A DNA stretch of 64,000 bases. Origin: Macrostomum lignano. Lineage: Eukaryota. The first letter of the stretch is position 1, and every line of letters begins with the position of its first letter. The notes under the pieces were generated by a model. That model did no database searches, was not told the origin of the DNA, and was given only the letters and a program-made list of their open reading frames with translations. Below are positions 5,042 to 35,813 of the stretch, one piece after another. The stretch spans positions 62,001 through 126,000 of the forward strand of contig NIVC01001424.1 in the NCBI GenBank assembly GCA_002269645.1. Reading direction: 5' to 3'. The translations under genes and the position numbers were made by a program.

Positions 5042-5735
5042 TCAGCAACGCACGAAGTAGTCTCCATCGGTGCTGCTCAGACTGGCAGGCGGGTAGGCGA
5101 ACCTCAGCAGGTGGCACAGACGCTGCTGGCCAGAGAAAATCGCAGCCTGGCAGTCAGCTGAGGCCTCGCACAGCCCCATGCACTCGATGTCGGTTCGCGC
5201 AGCGCTGGTCCAGTAGGTGCTCTGGGTGGACTCCACCGTCTGGTTGGGCATCTGCGACTGCTTGAAATACTTTTTATCTGTAAAAATACAAACTTGGCAA
5301 AAATTTGTTTGAAAATTCTTTAAAAATTGTAGAAGGCCCACCTGGGTAGGCCAAAGCGAACATGGAGTTGCGCCACCGACCCCCACATTTAGCAGCTCCG
5401 TTCCCAGTGCAGACGCGGTTGCAGTCGGTCTCGCTAGCAGCTCCCAGAGATCCGTAGGAGGTGCCGCAGGAGCAAAACAGACCGAACTGCACCCCGAAGT
5501 ACGGGAAGCCGCCGAGAGAGCAGACGCTGCTGCAGAGCTCATTCGTCATACTGGCGCTTCTCACCCCAAGACTGTCAGTGCTAAACTGTCCAATTCTGCT
5601 CACTCCAGTGAGTCCTCTCAGGTCTCTGCCTCGATTGTCCACAAAGCAGCCAATGTAGGACACCTGAGTTACTCTATTGGCGGCACAAAGCACCTTGACG
5701 GCGAGACCCACAATGCAGACGAAAGTCTTGAGCAT
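5042..5735 (-). CDS. Secreted WSC + PAN/Apple-like protein G2 (2 exons: 5735-5342, 5277-5042; ~209 aa)
   Basis: Signal peptide; WSC Cys pattern (GCFVD..LCSSVCSLGGFPYFGVQFGLFCSCG..DCNRVCTGNGAAKCGG). A 64-nt phase-1 GT-AG intron joins in frame to DKKYFKQSQ...ECMGLCEASADCQAAIF..QRLCHLL. Confidence 0.88.
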
Positions 5736-6978
5736 TGCTACTTGAGTAGCTGGGATTTTAGTTCTGCCGTTGGTCTTACTAGTGCAGTAGGCGATAAAAG
5801 CTGTGTTTGTCTGCTTTTATAGCAGTTTTTAGAGACAATCTGGTTGGTTAAAAGCCAGTAAACTAATGAGCTCAATGTACTACTTAAAGTGGCATATCTA
5901 TAAATTGATATTGATGGTAGTTTTAACTTCAGTTGATGAGATTCTCTGACCATCAGGTTCAAGCAGTGGCTTTTGATTCTCGCAAGTAAAATACAATGCT
6001 TTTTTCGTTTGTGTTTCGTCCAAATGAACGATTCAAGAAACAACTTGATGCAATAACTAAAAAGAGCAATGGTAGATTGTATAGTATGCAACTGAGTTGA
6101 ATAATGGCCAAAACTCGAGTGCGCGTAGCGCACGAGTGTCTATGGCCATTATTCAACGAAGTTTACTATACAAGTGCATTGTATTGATACTTTCACTCAG
6201 CGCTCAGTCATTATTCCACACTTTTGCGGCATTATTCCACACTTTTGTCGCTGTCATTATTCCACACTTTTTATCATGCTTCGTTTGGCTGTTTTAAGAG
6301 TTGTTTTACCCATAGACGACTGAGTTGTGTGGCTTAGTTTGACCATAGACAACACTGTGATGAGTGCTGATTTTGCTTGGGTCTTGCAAGAAATCAGGAA
6401 AGCGAGTAGTGGGAGAAAAAGCTATTTGTCTTGTCAAACAACTATGGCTCTAGTGCATCTCGTCAAACAGCCGCGCTTATTAATTGAAAAAATCTTCCTG
6501 TCGACGACTGAACGAACCATGCGGCGCTACCTAGGAAGAAAACGCGACCATGCAGTCTTCAACGCCTCGACGGCTATAAACGATGCCTGAAAGCGGCCAA
6601 TCGATTCAGTCGAGCAGCCGACAGTCCCAAAGAATCCCAGCTTGGATACTGCGGTACCAAAGAAGCTCATCAGACGAAGCTCATCAGTCGCATGCCAACT
6701 AAACCAAGACGTGCATCTTCAAATGGTAAGTTCGGCAACTATACTTGAGCACCTGTATTCCTCTTTCATAGAAAACATTCAACATAGACCAACTCCTTTT
6801 GCAGTGCCAAATCATCAGGCTAAAGTGTCGAGCATCTTTGGAAACTGAACTGCGGCTTTGAGAACTGTGCATGTTTCACTTTGGGTGACAAATTGATTTT
6901 TACATTGTCAAATTTCGACTACAAACTGATGAACTGCACTAGCTGTGACATTTATTATTAACTCTTTTCGTGTAGCTG

Positions 6979-7542: not shown

Positions 7543-7680
7543 TTTATTTTAATGATTTTTCCTTTTTGTTCATTTACTTCTTGTTGTTCTGTATTTATTA
7601 ACAAAAATACTGAGCGATGGATTTTTTCAATCCAAATGTCTATGGTACACATCAAAACTGTGGAATAATGGTATATTCTT

Positions 7681-27072: not shown

Positions 27073-27796
27073 ATGATTTCATACTTTGCAAGCCTCGCTG
27101 TCCTGGTGGCCTGCGTTGCCAGCAGGTCAACCCAGGTGTCCTACATTGGCTGCTTTGTGGACAATGAGGCCAGAGACCTGAGAGGACTCACTGGAGTGAG
27201 CAGAATCGGTCAGTTCAGCATCGGCAGCCTCATGCTGAGCAGCCTTAACATGACACACGAGCTCTGTAGCAGCGTCTGCTCTCTGGGCGGCTTCCCGTAC
27301 TTCAGTGTGCAGGCCAATTATCATTGTTTCTGCGGCAGCTCCTACGGATCTCTCGGAACTGCAAACGAGACCGACTGCAACGGCGTCTGCGGTGGAAACG
27401 GAGCTCAAATGTGCGGAGCCTCGTGGCGAAACTCAGTCTTCGCCCTAACCTACCCGGGTGAGTGAGCTCAGTGTGAGCAGTTCTGATTTTGCCTCTATGT
27501 TTTCAGCGTTTTTAAGTAACAATTATGGCCAACTCTAACAGAATATTTCTAAATTTTTAGATAGAAAGTATTTTGAGCAGACGCCAAGGACCAACCAGAC
27601 GGTGGAGTCCACCCAGAGCACCTACTGGACCAGCGCTGCCAAAATCAAGGCCGAGTGTTTGATGCTGTGCGAGGCCTCAGCTGACTGCCAGGCTGTGATT
27701 TTCTCTGGCCAGCAGCGCCTGTGCCACCTGCTGAGGTTCGCCTACCCGCCTGCCAGTCTGAGCAGCACCGATGGAGACTACTTTGTGCGCGGCTGA
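27073..27796 (+). CDS. Secreted WSC + PAN-like protein G7 (exons 27073-27457, 27561-27796)
   Basis: Open, in-phase two-exon model, near-identical to G6 from QVSYIG onward. A 1-nt deletion relative to G6 moves the start to the ATG at 27073, which still gives a signal peptide. Confidence 0.88.
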
Positions 27797-28488
27797 GCTC
27801 GCTGTCCAGCATTCAGCGTTGGAATAATTCAGCTCCTGGGGCTTCTAGACTAGACAAAATATTTTGAAAGAATTTGAAAATTTGTCTAAACTACTTCATT
27901 GGGAGTTTTTTAAAGAAAAAAATGTAATAATTAACTTGCTAACTTCATATTCGGTTTTAAGCAACATGAAAGAAGGAAATACACAGTGCGTGACAAGCTT
28001 CAACCAGCTACAGCAAGCAATACTCTTCAAAATATGCATCTTTTTTCAGTGCCAAAAGTGTACTGCCTTGTAAAGCATATAGTTAAACAAAAGCGTCCTA
28101 GAATCCCTTGGGCATCCCTGCCCACCGCCATTGTTACCTAACTAGCTGGCGGAGTCTTCTCCTGAAAGCTAAATTGTGCTTGCCTAGCTTTGGAACGTTG
28201 GAAGTAATTAATTATTAATCTGTGAGTTTCTTGACAACGCTGAGCTGCAAAACTCTTCGGGGGCCTTACTGTTGATTAGCAACTAAGTGGCTCTGTGAAT
28301 TGGGAGAGCTTTTTCCAGCTCAGTAAGCAATCTTTTGCTAATTAATGGACACCTGACGCACTCCTTGTTTTCTGCAGCAGCAGCAACAGCAGCAGCAGCA
28401 GCAGTAGTAGTATAGCTTTTTCCAGCTCAGTAAGCAATCTTTTGCTAATTAATGGACAACTGACGCACTCCTTGTTTTCTGCAGCAGA

Positions 28489-28519
<31 letters not shown>

Positions 28520-28587
28520 TAGCTTTTTCCAGCTCAGTAAGCAATCTTTTGCTAATTAATGGACAACTGACGCACTCCTTGTTTTCT

Positions 28588-28622
<35 letters not shown>

Positions 28623-31600
28623 CCCGACTCCCGGTCAGGGAACCTTGGGGGCTTGGAGACGACGTCCACGACGTGCCCCTGGACCGACCGAGAAATCGCG
28701 TCGGAGTACCGACTAACGGTCTCCCCTACCACCGAACCTGCGAAGAGATGCACACGGTGCTCAGGCTGCGAGGCGGCGACTCCACCATCGCCCCAGCCAA
28801 CCACCGCAAGACACGCCGTAGCGCCCGGAAACGTCGAGACGGACGGCCCAGCGCAGAGCCGGATCAAGAGCTCCGAGCACTTCAGTTCAACGCCAACGGA
28901 CTGAAAGCACGCCTCACAGAGCTGACCCATTGGCTCGCCAAGAACCGCCCGGCCCTCGTCCTCATCCAGGAGACAAAGCTCGTGCCCGACGAGGAGTTCA
29001 CCCCCCCAACCGACTACTGCATCGCAGCGCGAGTCGACGGACTCCCCTACAACGAGGAAACGGAGAGCGCTCGAGACGACAACATGGACACCAACAATAC
29101 CGGCACCCAACAACAGCAACAGCAACGACCTGTGGCCCGCACCGCGACCAGGCGAGTGACGAGACCACGGTGCCGCCTCCGCTTTCCAGACGATCGGGCC
29201 AGATGGTGCCGCGGATGCCGCAGTGGACGTACCGCCTGTACCGAACGCGACGCCCCGTGGCCAGGCACAGATGCAGGCCCCGAGCAAACCGAGGCCGGAG
29301 AACGAGAGGAGACGGGCGCGCCACTAGCCGGGAGAAAACCAAAAAGGCAAAAAAAACCAACCGGCAGGGGCGGCGTCCTGATCATGACTCGCTCGGACGT
29401 GAGGTACAGCACACTACCCACGATCCCACAGGACCAAGGCAAACTCGATGCGGCCGCCATCGTCCTTCACATCACCGGCAAGTCCCCCATCACCGTCGTT
29501 AATATCTACGCCCCGCCAACCAGCGCCCAGCGCCAGGACACTTGGACTCCGAACTTCGACACCCTGCCCGTGGGCCCCAACTCCATCATCTGTGGCGATT
29601 TCAACGGCCACGGCTGCTGGGACAGGTGGACCGATGAAGACGCTAGGGGACACCTCATCGAACACTGGAGTGCGACTAAAGGCCTCCACGTCTGTAACGG
29701 AACCAGCCACACCAGGAGCAGCCCGAGCAGCGGATCCCGGAGCTCACCCGATCTGACGCTGGCAAAGGGATTCCTGACCGCGATCATCCCGGCGGGTTGG
29801 AGGACCGAAAAGGATATGGGCAGCGACCATCTCCCCATCACCTTCCCGCTGGCAATGGCAAGGCGCGAACTCAAGCACGGTATCACTCGCTGGAGCTTCG
29901 CCAAGGCCGACTGGCCCGCTTTCAGACAACATCTAGCCGACATCCAAGGACCCCAGGACTGGGGTGACGTGGACCCTGAACACGCGGCCCTCTGCGCCGA
30001 CATCATCGAGGCCGCCACTCAGGCGATCCCCAGAGGCAGCCCCAAAAACAACCGCTGCCCTTTCTGGACCCCAGACTGTGAAATCAGCCGACAAGCCTGC
30101 ATCAGAGCAAGGGCGACGGCCGAGTCCGACCCGACTCCAGAAAACCTCGCGGCCTACAACGCAGCTCGACATACCGCCAGCAATACCATCCGCAAAGAGC
30201 GCAGAGGCTTCCTGGAAGACCGCGCCAGCGAAATGACGGTTGATAGCAACCTCTTCCGGCTCCTGCGCGCAGCCAGAGGAGATACGCCAGTCCCGCGCGG
30301 CAAAGTCGACATCACCCGGAAGTCGGTCGACGGCGTCGAGCTCCGACCGGCGCGCACCGACAAAGAAAAGGCAGACACTTTCTGCCAAATCTACGCCGCT
30401 GCCGCCAGGGTCCCCCGCCGACAGGAGGACTACAAGATCCGCTACGAGGCAAGACGCGCCAGGAGACGACCAGCCCAGCCGCCGGTACCCTTCACTCTCC
30501 TGGAGCTCAGATCAGCGATCCGACAACTCAAATCCGGCAAAAGCGCCGGGGAAGACGGCGTTACCAACGAGATGCTCAAACGCCTCCCACCGGCCACCGA
30601 CCAACGCCTCCTGGACCTCATCAACCGCACGTGGATACAACAGCGCTGCCCCAGAAGCTGGAGGTCGGCAATCATCATCCCAATTGCCAAAAAAGGAAAA
30701 GACGCCACCCTCCCAACATCCTACCGACCGGTGGCCCTTACGAGCTGCATCGCCAAATGTGCGGAGAGGATGGTGCTCCAAAGACTCAACCGCCAGCTCG
30801 AAACCAACGGCTCCCTGTCCCCGGCACAAGCCGGATTCCGCAGAGGCCGCAGCACCGAGGAGCAGCTCGCCAGGGTCTGTCAGGACATCTTCGACGGCCT
30901 GGAACGCTCTCCACCGCACAGGAGCATCCTCGCGTGCATGGACTTCAAAGGAGCCTACGAAACGGTCTGGAAGGAAGGCCTCGTTGTGAAGATGACTCGA
31001 GTAAAGATCGACCAGAACACCATCGGCTGGACGGAGGCCTTCCTTTCCGACCGACGCGCAAGAGTCCGTTTCGGGCGCACCCTGAGCCGCCAGCGCGTCT
31101 TCCGAGAGGGACTCCCACAAGGCTCGGTCCTGGCGCCAACTCTCTGGAACATCTACGTGAATGACCTAGAGGAGGCAGTCACGACAGCAGCGCCGGACTG
31201 CGGCATCAGCCTCTACGCCGATGATTCGGCTGTCCTCAGCACCCAGCCCTCACTGGCGAGCTGCGGAGCCAGGATACAACCGGCACTCGACGCTATAGCC
31301 AACTGGACCAAAGAGTGGAAAATCACCCTGAGTACCAGCAAGTGCAACTACTCAACATTCACGCTCGCCCCCAACGAGGTGAATGGCAAGCTCCGGGTCC
31401 CGCTCGAGCTAGCCGGCGAGCCACTCCAGTTTGAAGAACACCCAACCTTCCTGGGCCTCATCCTGGACTGCCAGCTGAACTTCGCCCAGCACGCAGCCAA
31501 TGTCTGCCGCCGCATGAGCCGACGCCGACGCGCTCTCGCCGACCTCGCGAACCGCGCGGTAGGAGCCACCCAGGAGGTGCTCCGGACGGCCTACCAGGCA

Positions 31601-33020
31601 ACCATCCGCGCCGTGGCCGAATACGGATGCGGGTCTGGGGAGCCAGCGCGGCACCGAGTACCAAACTGCTTATCGAACAGCAACAGAACAGCTGCGCAAG
31701 AATCATCACCGGATGTATGCTCCCAACTCGAACCACGGAGCTGCTTCGGACGGCCAACCTCCCCCCTTTGGCCACACCATCCTGGAACGCGCCGCCTGCC
31801 TCCGAGAACGGGTGCTGCGCCTCCCGGAGGACGTCCCAGCACACCGGACTGCGGCCAGAGACACCACCAGCAGACTACGAAACCGCGCCTACGAGAGCGC
31901 CCGCCGACAAGAAGAGGCAAATTTTAACGCGCTACTAGACAATGATTACAAGCGCCCTTTCCGCGGCTGCTGGCGGCGAATCGCGAGAGAAATCACCGGT
32001 CCCTGCGGCCTCGAAGACCGGCCCAGGGAGCCGTTCCCGCCACCGCCGCCCGACCTGGCACACCTCGCGCTCAACCGGTACAGCCAGACTTTCGACCTCA
32101 CCCTCGCCGACGGCTGCGGCAGAGCAGTCCCGACGAGCGTCCGCCGCGACAGGGCGATGTCAGCTCTCGAGCAGCTAACACCCTGTGACATCGACGCGTG
32201 GACGGACGGCAGCGTCAAGGAGGGCATCCACGACGCATGGGGTGCCGCGGTGGTCTGCACCCGCCTCTGGTGCCAAAAGATCACCGCCCCGGCCGGCCGG
32301 ATCGCATGCAGCTTCCAGGCGGAGATGGTCGCGATCAGCGCCGCCCTCGACTACATTACTCAACTCCCGCCAGAGCACGGCCTTACAGTGCGGATCCTCA
32401 GCGACTCCAAATCAGCACTCACGGCCCTCCAGAGCGGCCCCAGTAGGCAGGTCACCGCCGCCGGAAGCCGCTGCTGGGAGGTACTGGCCCACATGTCGCG
32501 CCCGTGCGACTTCGTCTGGGTCCCGGCCCACTGCGACGTCCCGGGCAACGAGCAAGCAGACCGCTGCGCCAACGAAGCTAGACGCGGCCAACAGCAGGAC
32601 GAACCCATTACGCTGCAGGCCGCCAAGGCCGCCATCCGACGCGCGCGGTCCGCCCGCGACCAGGAACTGCTTGGACGCCCCTGGCAACGACCACCACGAC
32701 ACCTGACCAGGAAAGAAACGGTGGCGATTAACCAACTCAGAGCCGGGTGCTCCACCCTGGCCGGGGCCACACGTCACCGGGTCGGCCTGACTGAGAACGC
32801 CAGCTGTCCCGATTGCGGGGCGCCCGACACGGAGGAGCATATCATCCTTGAATGCCCACGCGGCGACGCCCTTCGGGCGAGCACTGAGGACGAGAGGGAC
32901 ACCCGCGACGACCCGGAGCGTCTTCTCGCCCTCCTTCGCAGGTTGGGGCGCCTCTGAGCGCCCTCCCCCCAGCTGCCAGCGGCAGCGTTGTGGGGCGGTG
33001 GAAGAAAAGAAAAGAAAAAG
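28623..33020 (+). mobile_element. Near-full-length single-ORF non-LTR retrotransposon (APE-RT-RNase H; I-group/Ingi-like)
   Basis: TSD (a)gcagcagtagt at 28611/12-28622 and 33019/20-33030; (GAAAA)n 3' tail. The frame is open up to the 5' junction, so the copy may be slightly 5'-truncated. Confidence 0.93.
28673..32957 (+). CDS. LINE polyprotein: APE endonuclease, reverse transcriptase, RNase H, CCHC knuckle (two 1-nt frameshifts at ~31631 and ~31775)
   Basis: APE: QFNANG, IQETK, NIYAPP, GDFNGH, PDLT, SDHLPI. RT: SYRPVALTSC, QAGFR, GLPQGSVLAPTLW, YADD, FLGL. RNase H: WTDGS, AEMVAI, SDSKS, WVPAH..GNEQAD. Knuckle: CPDCGAPDTEEHIILEC. Adding one G and one C at the two sites joins the ORFs into ~1,430 codons. 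Confidence 0.92.
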
Positions 33021-33102
33021 CAGCAGTAGTAGTATAGCTTTTTCCAGCTCAGTAAGCAATCTTTTGCTAATTAATGGACAACTGACGCACTCCTTGTTTT
33101 CT

Positions 33103-33967: not shown

Positions 33968-34194
<227 letters not shown>

Positions 34195-34745
34195 CTTAGT
34201 TTATACTAAACTAAGTGCTATCTTTATAAGAGTGCACTGCCATTCTCTACAAACTGTAAGATGTTTCTTCACAAAAATTCCTTTTTAGCTACTATACAGT
34301 AGACGGTCTCTCATGTTATTGACATTTCTTCTCAGAGAATAGAGCAGCAGACGTGTAGAATTCCATCGTACACAGGCCAAGCGTTTCCAAAAGTGTCTTA
34401 AGTTTAAGAACGTTGATGGAGTTTCCATCTTAGACAATTAGTACCCAAGAGCGAACCAAGGCAGTACACTGCTGTGTACAAATGTTTTTAAAATGAGACT
34501 AAAAATCTTACGTAGCTACTGACTAGAAGCAGCACGTCCTGAAAATCGTTGAAAAACAGACAGACAAAAGTGCTATAAAATCAAGGTAGGCTGGACCATA
34601 GAAGCAGGCGAGTTGTTTCTGACTGATAGATAAGCAAGCCTAGGTTGCGAGGCCCCTATCGCAACCCCAAGATAAAGGAACCAAGGTTCAACCTCGGGGG
34701 TGCGCCCAGCTCACGCCAGCAGTAAACAGGTTTGCAGGGGAGACA

Positions 34746-35106: not shown

Positions 35107-35813
35107 TACCTTTTTACGTTCTATTTGATAAAAACTGCAACCAATTTGGCCACGGCTCAGCCTGACGCAGCCGCAGCAATTTTCCATAGACATCCACCGC
35201 TAGCGGCAACCAATTCGGTAAAAACTGCGAGCTATTTTGCCAGCTTGAAGATAGCAGCTCAATAGCATAACAATAACGATAAAGAATGTTAACAATACAT
35301 GCACGAAGTCAGAACATTATGTCCTCAGCATTCAAGCACCGATTGAAGTACGTCTGGGAATGGTTGATCCAGCGCAGGCACTTGAGAGGCGTGAGAGGCA
35401 GTAGGTTGACCTTCGACGAATTGAACAATGGTGTCCACCATAGCCTCCGTCAGCGCCATCCTCTTCACTCCTTGTTTTGGCAGAGTGCCAACTCTACCAG
35501 TTCGTTCATACGTGGTCACGATGTTCCTCACTGTCGGTTTCTTCATCCCCATCATTCTGCCAAGCTCTCCCCGGTCGTCGCCACTCCTGTACGCTCTCAC
35601 GATTCGCTCTCGATCCAGCTGACTTATCTTTTGGTACGGCCCACGATTCGCCATCAGAGCAGCTGCTATCTTCAAGCTGGCAAAATAGCTCGCAGTTTTT
35701 ACCAAATTGGTTGCCGCTAGCGGTGGCTGTCTATGGAAAATTCTATGTCTATGGTCAGGCTGAGCCGTGGCCAAATTAGTTGCAGTTTTTATCAAATAGA
35801 ACGTAAAAAGGTA
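35107..35813 (-). mobile_element. Non-autonomous Tc1/IS630-like element with ~150-bp TIRs, retaining only the HTH region
   Basis: tacctttttacgttctatttgataaaaactgcaac... mirrored at 35813, with TA flanks. The internal minus frame reads MANRGPYQKISQLDRERIVRAYRSG..LGRMMGMKKPTVRNIVTTYERTG (paired-like HTH); no DDE domain. Confidence 0.82.

Follow-up and report, generated by a model that had tools for sequence, protein, structure and literature searches.

Several lineages of APE-type long interspersed nuclear elements (LINEs), namely L1Tc, ingi and Rex1/CR1/L2/Crack, carry a 2A (StopGo) peptide at the N-terminus of their polyprotein (Heras 2006; Odon et al. 2013; PMC3708506). A role in translational down-regulation has been proposed for these peptides, and it is debated whether the N-terminal 2A serves to separate a leader or to down-regulate ORF2p (PMC3708506). 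Here we describe a LINE of Macrostomum lignano in which the position of the 2A peptide is occupied by a motif identical to the C-terminal tail of ubiquitin. The element lies in a stretch of 64,000 nucleotides (GenBank assembly GCA_002269645.1, contig NIVC01001424.1, positions 62,001 to 126,000 of the forward strand), referred to as the window and numbered from its first base.

Three further systems invite comparison. The natural ubiquitin fusion precursors (polyubiquitin, Ub-L40 and Ub-S27a) have the identical VLRLRGG followed by a residue other than Pro and are processed by host deubiquitinases; the LINE leader differs from them in being 6–90 residues long, unconserved, disordered by prediction, devoid of a beta-grasp and not derived from a ubiquitin gene. 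Cytopathogenic pestiviruses have captured host ubiquitin, which is cut by host ubiquitin hydrolases and thereby releases NS3. As in the process considered below, the polyprotein of a genetic parasite is thus matured by host deubiquitinases, but the pestivirus inserts are whole or near-whole ubiquitin folds gained by recombination, whereas the LINE has the tail alone, evolved in situ from a 2A peptide. Finally, the papain-like proteases of coronaviruses and arteriviruses cleave LXGG within unfolded linkers of a polyprotein, where no ubiquitin fold is present. Both cases have in common a site of the LRGG type in such a linker; the viruses, however, encode the protease themselves, and the LINE has no protease domain.

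A ubiquitin-tail motif conserved in four LINE families

Positions 28748–28780 (forward strand; ATG CAC ACG GTG CTC AGG CTG CGA GGC GGC GAC) encode M-H-T-V-L-R-L-R-G-G-D in the leader of the LINE polyprotein. Direct translation confirms the peptide read in a preliminary description of the window, which had also recognised the ATG as the first in-frame one of an open reading frame (ORF) and had counted eight identities, in register, among the nine residues H68–G76 of ubiquitin. Both observations hold: nothing closes the leader frame between the first base of the element, 28622, and 31927, and a phmmer search of the Protein Data Bank (PDB) returned polyubiquitin chains as sole matches, aligned over ubiquitin residues 64/66–76. 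That the peptide belongs to a LINE polyprotein leader was likewise borne out by Pfam matches to APE, reverse transcriptase (RT) and RNase H domains. Only the distance from the Gly-Gly to the first endonuclease motif, QFNANG, needed correction, there being 36 residues between them in place of about 30. Translated in all six frames, the window contains a single LRLRGG, and 200 block-shuffled windows gave 0.02 LRLRGG and 0 VLRLRGG per window.

Counterparts of the motif were present in three further families, so that four were compared in all. The M. lignano locus L001 (contig NIVC01002647.1; 45–47% identity over APE/RT) carries it within NLHRVLRLRGGDS, and locus L015, on a JGI metagenome contig (38–61% identity), retains VLRLRGG within INKVLRLRGGDG. 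In the protein P0178 (UniParc UPI0007A11279; 42–55% identity) it takes the form VMRLRGG (LLSVMRLRGGNS). Exact VLRLRGG is therefore found in three of the four families. In the leader alignments V-RLRGG is invariant, with an entropy of 0 at six of the seven motif positions, and the rest of the leader is nearly unalignable owing to long indels. The ATG at 28748 is replaced by CTA (Leu) in L001, by Leu in P0178 and by Ile in L015. Hence the conserved unit is V[L/M]RLRGG[D/N] and not MH.VLRLRGGD, both the Met and the residue equivalent to His68 being variable. Given the conservation in three further diverged families, chance is irrelevant as an origin of the motif.

The codons used for the motif differ among the families (V GTG/GTT/GTC; R AGG/CGT/AGA; L CTG/CTA/CTC; R CGA/CGC/AGA; G GGC/GGA; S TCC/AGT). 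Between the window and L001, 18 of the 27 nucleotides are identical and no amino acid is changed, even though the differences include AGG/CGT and TCC/AGT switches; L015 uses further codons again (AGA, GGA). Because codons differ while residues do not, the constraint must act on the peptide. Conservation at the RNA level was rejected in view of the nine silent differences; RNAfold z-scores were 0.21 and −0.65. The preliminary description had regarded absence of the motif from sister families as fatal to its proposal and had suggested a look at synonymous sites and flanks; the motif proved invariant in the four families, with synonymous sites and flanks varying freely around a fixed peptide.

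Of the 2747 relatives that a full HMMER search of 1.84 billion representatives gave, the best 150 were inspected and contained no motif outside the families named. A metagenome scan for further copies returned unrelated jockey-like LINEs alone, and protein searches by word index yielded few relatives. The closest homologues of the window element are the M. lignano proteins P0001 and P0003 (UniRef A0A1I8I140); P0003, P0178 and P0184 are protein records with no contig on record. The last of these is a distant LINE protein (24% identity) with a gag-like N-terminal part, APE and RT and without RNase H, which shows PLRLRGGGD near its N-terminus (residues 64–69). This may be an independent site of the ubiquitin-tail kind or may be a product of the word index, which favours shared pentamers.

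The resemblance to ubiquitin is confined to its tail. By sequence the motif has the C-terminal LRLRGG ending in Gly-Gly that characterises ubiquitin-like tails; a beta-grasp is missing. The window leader comprises at most 52 residues, as against about 76 for the ubiquitin beta-grasp, and large indels separate the leaders of the families. AlphaFold2, run with a shallow alignment, assigned residues 1–80 no secondary structure and a pLDDT below 50, the APE core beginning at around residue 84, and the motif segment is thus predicted to be disordered and exposed. The phmmer/PDB alignment likewise revealed no ubiquitin fold upstream of the tail, as the preliminary description had stated. A whole ubiquitin domain hidden further upstream or in fuller copies was rejected: the frame is open from the element's first base alone, similarity to ubiquitin in the leaders of L001, P0178 and L015 ends with the tail, and the AlphaFold2 prediction is one of disorder.

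Relation to 2A peptides

Among the 71 related proteins whose leader has 30 residues or more, 14 contain the 2A motif GD(V/I)ExNPGP, for instance as LLLIRAGDIETNPGP in P0005 and as LLMRAGDVESNPGP in P0016. Further carriers are P0181, L012 (LVRLRAGDIEMNPGP) and L016 (LLLLRAGDVERNPGP), L014 has a degenerate form, and at least 17 related leaders contain the motif altogether. A neighbour-joining tree built on the C-terminal half of the APE domain groups the window element with P0178 and P0003, in a clade that is nested among lineages with 2A. In a sister lineage (L017/L018 at ~5440–5470, P0004 and P0006) the 2A-like sequence is divergent (LIMTGIEPKPGP; IDHGWHRNKPGP) and precedes a PHD-type zinc finger, a further deviation from the canonical NPGP inside the clade.

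Aligning the window with L012 by BLASTP extends the APE alignment back through the leader, where TVLRLRGGDSTIAPA is paired with ALVRLRAGDIEMNPG. In a MAFFT alignment of six leaders, RLRGGD falls on RLRAGD of the L012 and L016 2A peptides; L-R-x-G is invariant, D is present in five of the six, and a shared GF.T.G / TNG block further upstream aligns as well. The Asp that follows the Gly-Gly in the window is aligned with the invariant D of the 2A signature GD(V/I)E. From these alignments it follows that a 2A peptide gave rise to the motif, which was not captured from ubiquitin; capture from a host ubiquitin mRNA was rejected on the same grounds. As judged by sequence comparison, the ubiquitin-like tail is the N-terminal half of a former 2A in which Ala was changed to Gly and the (V/I)ExNPGP half decayed.

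What defines a 2A peptide, D(V/I)ExNPGP, is absent from the window element, which reads GGDSTIAPAN at this place; L001, P0178 and L015 also lack NPGP. With NPGP lost, ribosome skipping is impossible, and an unselected remnant should decay. Instead, the seven positions are held more tightly than in working 2A peptides, for which the leaders of 17 relatives gave 0.6–2.5 bits at six of the seven positions. The remnant therefore looks functional, and its constraint agrees with recognition in the cleft of an enzyme better than with a general need for a helix.

Compared with the N-terminal 2A of other LINEs, the motif occupies the same slot (leader, signal, basic linker, APE) within the same clade and is homologous in sequence. 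It differs by lacking (V/I)E and NPGP, by the invariance of the retained half, which is variable in 2A peptides, and by its identity with the ubiquitin tail; any separation would be post-translational and would take place eight residues further upstream. The suggestion in the preliminary description that a ubiquitin tail is used in place of 2A is supported as to the slot and by the wide occurrence of 2A in sister lineages, and has to be amended in that the motif itself is derived from 2A.

The leader RNA and the organisation of the element

HDV-like ribozymes are known from the 5' ends of LINEs, as L1Tc Pr77/L1TcRz (PMC3383444, PMC4035085) and in R2 (PMC3774820), and L1Tc combines its 5' HDV-like ribozyme with an N-terminal 2A (PMC3383444, PMC4035085). 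In the window, a descriptor search marked a candidate of this kind within the open leader frame, upstream of the motif (Table 1). P1 would be formed by 28646–52/28675–81 (TGGGGGC/GCCCCTG), P2 by 28655–60/28719–24 (GGAGAC/GTCTCC) and P3 by 28662–64/28672–74 (ACG/CGT), with TCCACGA as L3, GA at 28682–83 as P1.1, a GAAA loop on P4 (28684–28704) and a J4/2 ending in ...CTAACG. Over the VHD(V/A)PLD block encoded here, 24 of 29 nucleotides are identical between the window and L001 without any synonymous change. This is the opposite of the pattern seen over the motif and points to a constraint on the RNA. The descriptor also matches L013:125–190, compactly and perfectly, at the same place of a 2A-type relative, and the L001 core (~2004–2079) and L014 (~7590–7680) fit the same fold by eye. 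In the four loci, compared as hand-picked segments, pairing is found in 96.7% of cells and compensatory change in 9 of 15 pairs; the A-U in P3 of the window is G-C in L001, P2 covaries between families, and C-N-A-A precedes P2' in all four.

On the other side, the descriptor is loose (about 40 matches per strand in the window), an Rfam search of the leader (window and L013) gave no match to a ribozyme family, and the RNAfold z-scores given above are not significant. The predicted cut at 28645/28646 is not at the 5' end of the element (28622/3) but 24 nucleotides inside it. These 24 nucleotides are partly conserved in L001, and the offset is unexplained by simple 5' processing. The candidate resembles the L1Tc ribozyme as a putative nested double pseudoknot in the 5' leader, overlapped by an open frame and placed upstream of a 2A-type signal; it differs from known LINE ribozymes by the missing Rfam match, the long J4/2 and a cut that is not at the first base. 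The leader upstream of the motif appears to be largely a conserved RNA element and not a protein domain. Should the ribozyme prove genuine, the leader peptide would for the most part arise incidentally, by translation through it, and this would provide a rationale for a removal signal, be it 2A or ubiquitin tail.

The element is 4.4 kb long and present as a single copy in the window. Having both APE and RT, a target-site duplication and an A-rich tail, it is an APE-type LINE; as in the L1Tc/ingi-like clade, a name that we use provisionally, a single ORF comprises APE, RT and, downstream of the latter, RNase H, and a separate ORF1 is missing. Its flanks are the two halves of one satellite, an approximately 113-bp tandem repeat, and its 5' base is ambiguous by one nucleotide, T28622 being possibly part of the target-site duplication. 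The polyprotein is broken by two frameshifts. Either this copy is defective or the assembly contains indels at these places; as assembled, the full polyprotein is not producible.

Table 1. Coordinates of the LINE, its leader signals and its domains in the window.
Feature	Position	Strand	Remarks
Non-LTR (non-long-terminal-repeat; LINE) retrotransposon, one polyprotein: leader-APE-RT-RNase H-zinc knuckle	28622..33019	+	Pfam Exo_endo_phos, RVT_1, RNase_H
5' target-site duplication GCAGCAGTAGT, 11 bp	28612..28622	+	within (CAG)n(TAG)n part of the ~113-bp tandem repeat (28300–28621)
Candidate HDV-like self-cleaving ribozyme, within open leader	28646..28724	+	descriptor search; encodes the VHDVPLD block
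First in-frame ATG of the window copy	28748..28750	+	not kept in other families
VLRLRGG, ubiquitin tail mimic (ubiquitin V70–G76)	28757..28777	+	conserved core; putative cut after G, between 28777 and 28778
P1'-P2' residues D-S	28778..28783	+	four families: P1' D, D, N, D; P2' S, S, S, G
Basic disordered linker HRKTRRSARKRRDGR, motif to APE	28784..28879	+	AlphaFold2 pLDDT <50
APE (exonuclease-endonuclease-phosphatase) domain	28880..29830	+	Pfam PF03372/PF14529; AlphaFold2 core confident from residue 84
Cys-rich insert C-x11-W-C-x2-C-x6-C (RPRCRLRFPDDRARWCRGCRSGRTAC) within APE	29171..29248	+	kept across the whole clade including 2A-type relatives
Reverse transcriptase domain	30686..31387	+	Pfam RVT_1 (PF00078), E=4.6e-36
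Segment between the two frameshifts, RT to RNase H	31633..31773	+	tblastn of P0178 and P0007 switches frame twice (~31633, ~31770)
RNase H domain	32196..32579	+	Pfam PF00075; next frame relative to APE/RT
C-terminal zinc knuckle CPDCGAPDTEEHIILECP	32806..32858	+	
A/G-rich 3' tail GGAAGAAAAGAAAAGAAAAA	33000..33019	+	
3' target-site duplication GCAGCAGTAGT, 11 bp	33020..33030	+	directly after the A-rich tail; satellite goes on to ~33790

The basic linker that joins the motif to the APE domain resembles a nuclear localisation signal. The APE domain is interrupted by a long low-complexity, Cys-rich insertion (~29036–29341), whose Cys-rich pattern also occurs in the ubiquitin-tail and 2A-type relatives inspected, e.g. 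P0005, P0007, P0009, P0011 and P0017, and may be a zinc-binding module for target recognition. Directly upstream of the satellite lies a host gene fragment (27073–27790, forward strand) that begins in the manner of a signal peptide, contains a WSC domain (Pfam PF01822, E=1e-13) and seems to be interrupted by an intron at 27459–27560. Next to the satellite array, about 75 units of (GTA)n/(TAG)n form a long pure microsatellite (33970–34195). Further downstream, an ORF on the reverse strand (35325–35795) has a helix-turn-helix-like N-terminus (RIVRAYRSGDDRGELGRMMGMKKPTVRNIVTTYERTGRV) and, from the ORF list alone, is reminiscent of a Tc1/mariner-type transposase.

Possible roles of the motif

It is plausible that the motif is a functional peptide signal in the disordered leader of a LINE lineage with a single APE-RT-RNase H ORF, found in Macrostomum-type flatworms. 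The reading that we favour, tentatively and short of calling it probable, is that of a replacement leader-removal site, putatively cut after Gly-Gly by a host protease of the deubiquitinase (DUB) type. A sequence such as ...LVRLRAGD-IEMNPGP would have changed into ...VLRLRGGD-STIAP, co-translational skipping being lost together with NPGP, and the retained half, now equal to the ubiquitin tail, would do the former job of 2A after translation. Cleavage behind the Gly-Gly by a host cysteine protease of the deubiquitinase type would free the enzyme from its short, variable leader, for which the 5' RNA element, the candidate HDV-like ribozyme, codes. Asp or Asn would thereby become the first residue of the mature enzyme, and in the Arg/N-degron pathway such N-termini are destabilising.

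We infer the cleavage, the protease involved and any degron effect from several considerations. Once a co-translational separation signal has been lost, its simplest functional replacement is a post-translational one that is read by ubiquitous host enzymes. Since a Pfam scan of the element revealed no protease domain, any cleavage would need an enzyme of the host. The invariant residues correspond to V70, R72, L73, R74, G75 and G76 of ubiquitin, i.e. to its flexible tail, which a review considers to be possibly the feature that counts most when proteases recognise ubiquitin or a ubiquitin-like protein (PMC4822132). The residue after the Gly-Gly, D in three families and N in one, fits the Arg/N-degron pathway, but the D is also inherited from the GD of 2A. 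The most far-reaching version, in which the LINE has turned its 2A into a fold-less DUB site whose cleavage removes the leader, exposes an Asp or Asn N-degron and so self-limits the half-life of the endonuclease and RT, we regard as rather doubtful.

A number of points weigh against cleavage by a DUB. Most enzymes of the USP and UCH types bind the globular body of ubiquitin, and peptides of the LRGG type are cleaved orders of magnitude less than ubiquitin fusions; neither phmmer/PDB nor AlphaFold2 revealed a ubiquitin fold in the leader. The identity with ubiquitin is one or two steps away from an L012-like 2A (RLRAGD to RLRGGD) and so may be partly fortuitous, and His68 is not kept across the families. 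As measured from the nearest Met, the leader is short (10 residues in the window, about 40 in L001 and about 20 in L015; 6–40 overall), which makes the benefit of its removal doubtful. The families are four in all, probably from one flatworm group, each is seen as a defective copy or gene model, and every copy examined is dead or defective.

In the main rival account, possible but on balance unlikely, the motif is a relic of 2A kept for a role other than cleavage, and its identity with ubiquitin is a stepwise convergence without mechanistic meaning. The role could lie in slowing or tuning translation through the nascent chain, in nuclear or nucleolar import or nucleic-acid binding as a bipartite basic signal with the R/K-rich linker, or in a contact to the element's own RNA or to the APE domain. 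The homology of the motif with 2A, the one or two substitutions that lead from an L012-type 2A to RLRGG, the basic stretch following RLR in all families and the lack of a ubiquitin fold would all agree with this, as would the translational down-regulation proposed for 2A peptides of LINEs (PMC3708506). Yet the same positions are highly variable in working 2A peptides, so that the ancestors give no sign of a second, sequence-specific function; neither an import signal nor an RGG-type motif would require invariant V, L and GG, and an exact seven-residue identity in three of four families is left as a coincidence. Cleavage at or near the Gly-Gly by another protease, either one specific for NEDD8- or ISG15-type ubiquitin-like proteins or an LXGG-specific enzyme acting in trans from a mobile element or virus, can draw on the same evidence for a processing site, and viral papain-like proteases do cut unfolded LXGG linkers. 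With no protease domain in the element, no candidate acting in trans identified, and less parsimony than an appeal to ubiquitous host DUBs, we consider this improbable.

The element might also have been selected to free its protein after insertion into a Gln frame of (CAG)n, the motif, like 2A, resolving fusions with host polyglutamine exons. The window and L001 elements both start directly after (CAG)n, with the LINE frame open from the first base and continuing CAG as Gln, and L001 (junction region 1850–1910) is located within a C2H2-zinc-finger/polyglutamine coding exon and annotated as one fused protein. This pattern is, however, seen at two loci only, the frame in the window is closed by a TAG in the satellite, and an active 5' ribozyme would sever the upstream host RNA. 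Moreover, L015 is not inserted in (CAG)n: its 13-bp target-site duplication (AGGATGATGCTGT, L015:1061–1073 and 5806–5818) places it at the 3' end of an snRNP-G (LSM) gene, antisense within the last codons, and removal of the insert restores an ORF ending in RGDSIILLEALEPVN and a stop codon (C-terminus ...LLEALEPVN). Gln-frame insertion specific for (CAG)n is thereby weakened as a general rule, and read-in release appears very unlikely. No more credit is due to the view that the motif has no function and is shared by recent common descent or chance; it is short and known from four families of probably related hosts with defective copies throughout, but the enzymatic domains have diverged to 38–54% identity and the leader is unalignable, with large indels, around a block that stays invariant in differing codons, and the chance expectation for LRLRGG is as low as stated above. 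Least probable of all is that an uncleaved tail acts as a decoy or ligand, binding DUBs or readers of the ubiquitin tail and thus modulating host signalling or protecting the LINE protein, or that the conservation resides in the RNA. The tail residues L71, L73 and R72–G76 do sit in DUB clefts (PMC4822132). As to the RNA, the silent differences at 9 of 27 nucleotides and the want of significant local structure speak against it. Readers of the ZnF-UBP type require the free carboxylate of the Gly-Gly, which tells against the decoy.

A full-text search of the literature found, among the papers covered, neither a ubiquitin-tail site in any retrotransposon nor LRLRGG together with a retrotransposon; the preliminary description, too, knew of no earlier account. 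While leader-processing signals of LINEs such as 2A are known, a ubiquitin-tail motif in the 2A slot of a LINE leader appears to be new. We thus have a LINE lineage in which this slot is taken by a different, strictly conserved signal that is identical to the tail of ubiquitin. A working transgenesis method exists for M. lignano (PMC5730564). If the motif is not cleaved, a second function would be hidden in the upstream region of 2A. If it is cleaved, release or definition of the N-terminus would be what selection maintains in LINE leaders, host deubiquitinases would join the short list of maturation routes for mobile-element proteins, and a minimal, seven-residue and fold-independent DUB substrate would be of biotechnological interest. 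Leader removal by a host deubiquitinase would, if true, make this the first retrotransposon shown to use the ubiquitin-processing machinery of its host for polyprotein maturation, and the lineage would represent a natural experiment on the selection behind the enigmatic N-terminal 2A of LINEs.

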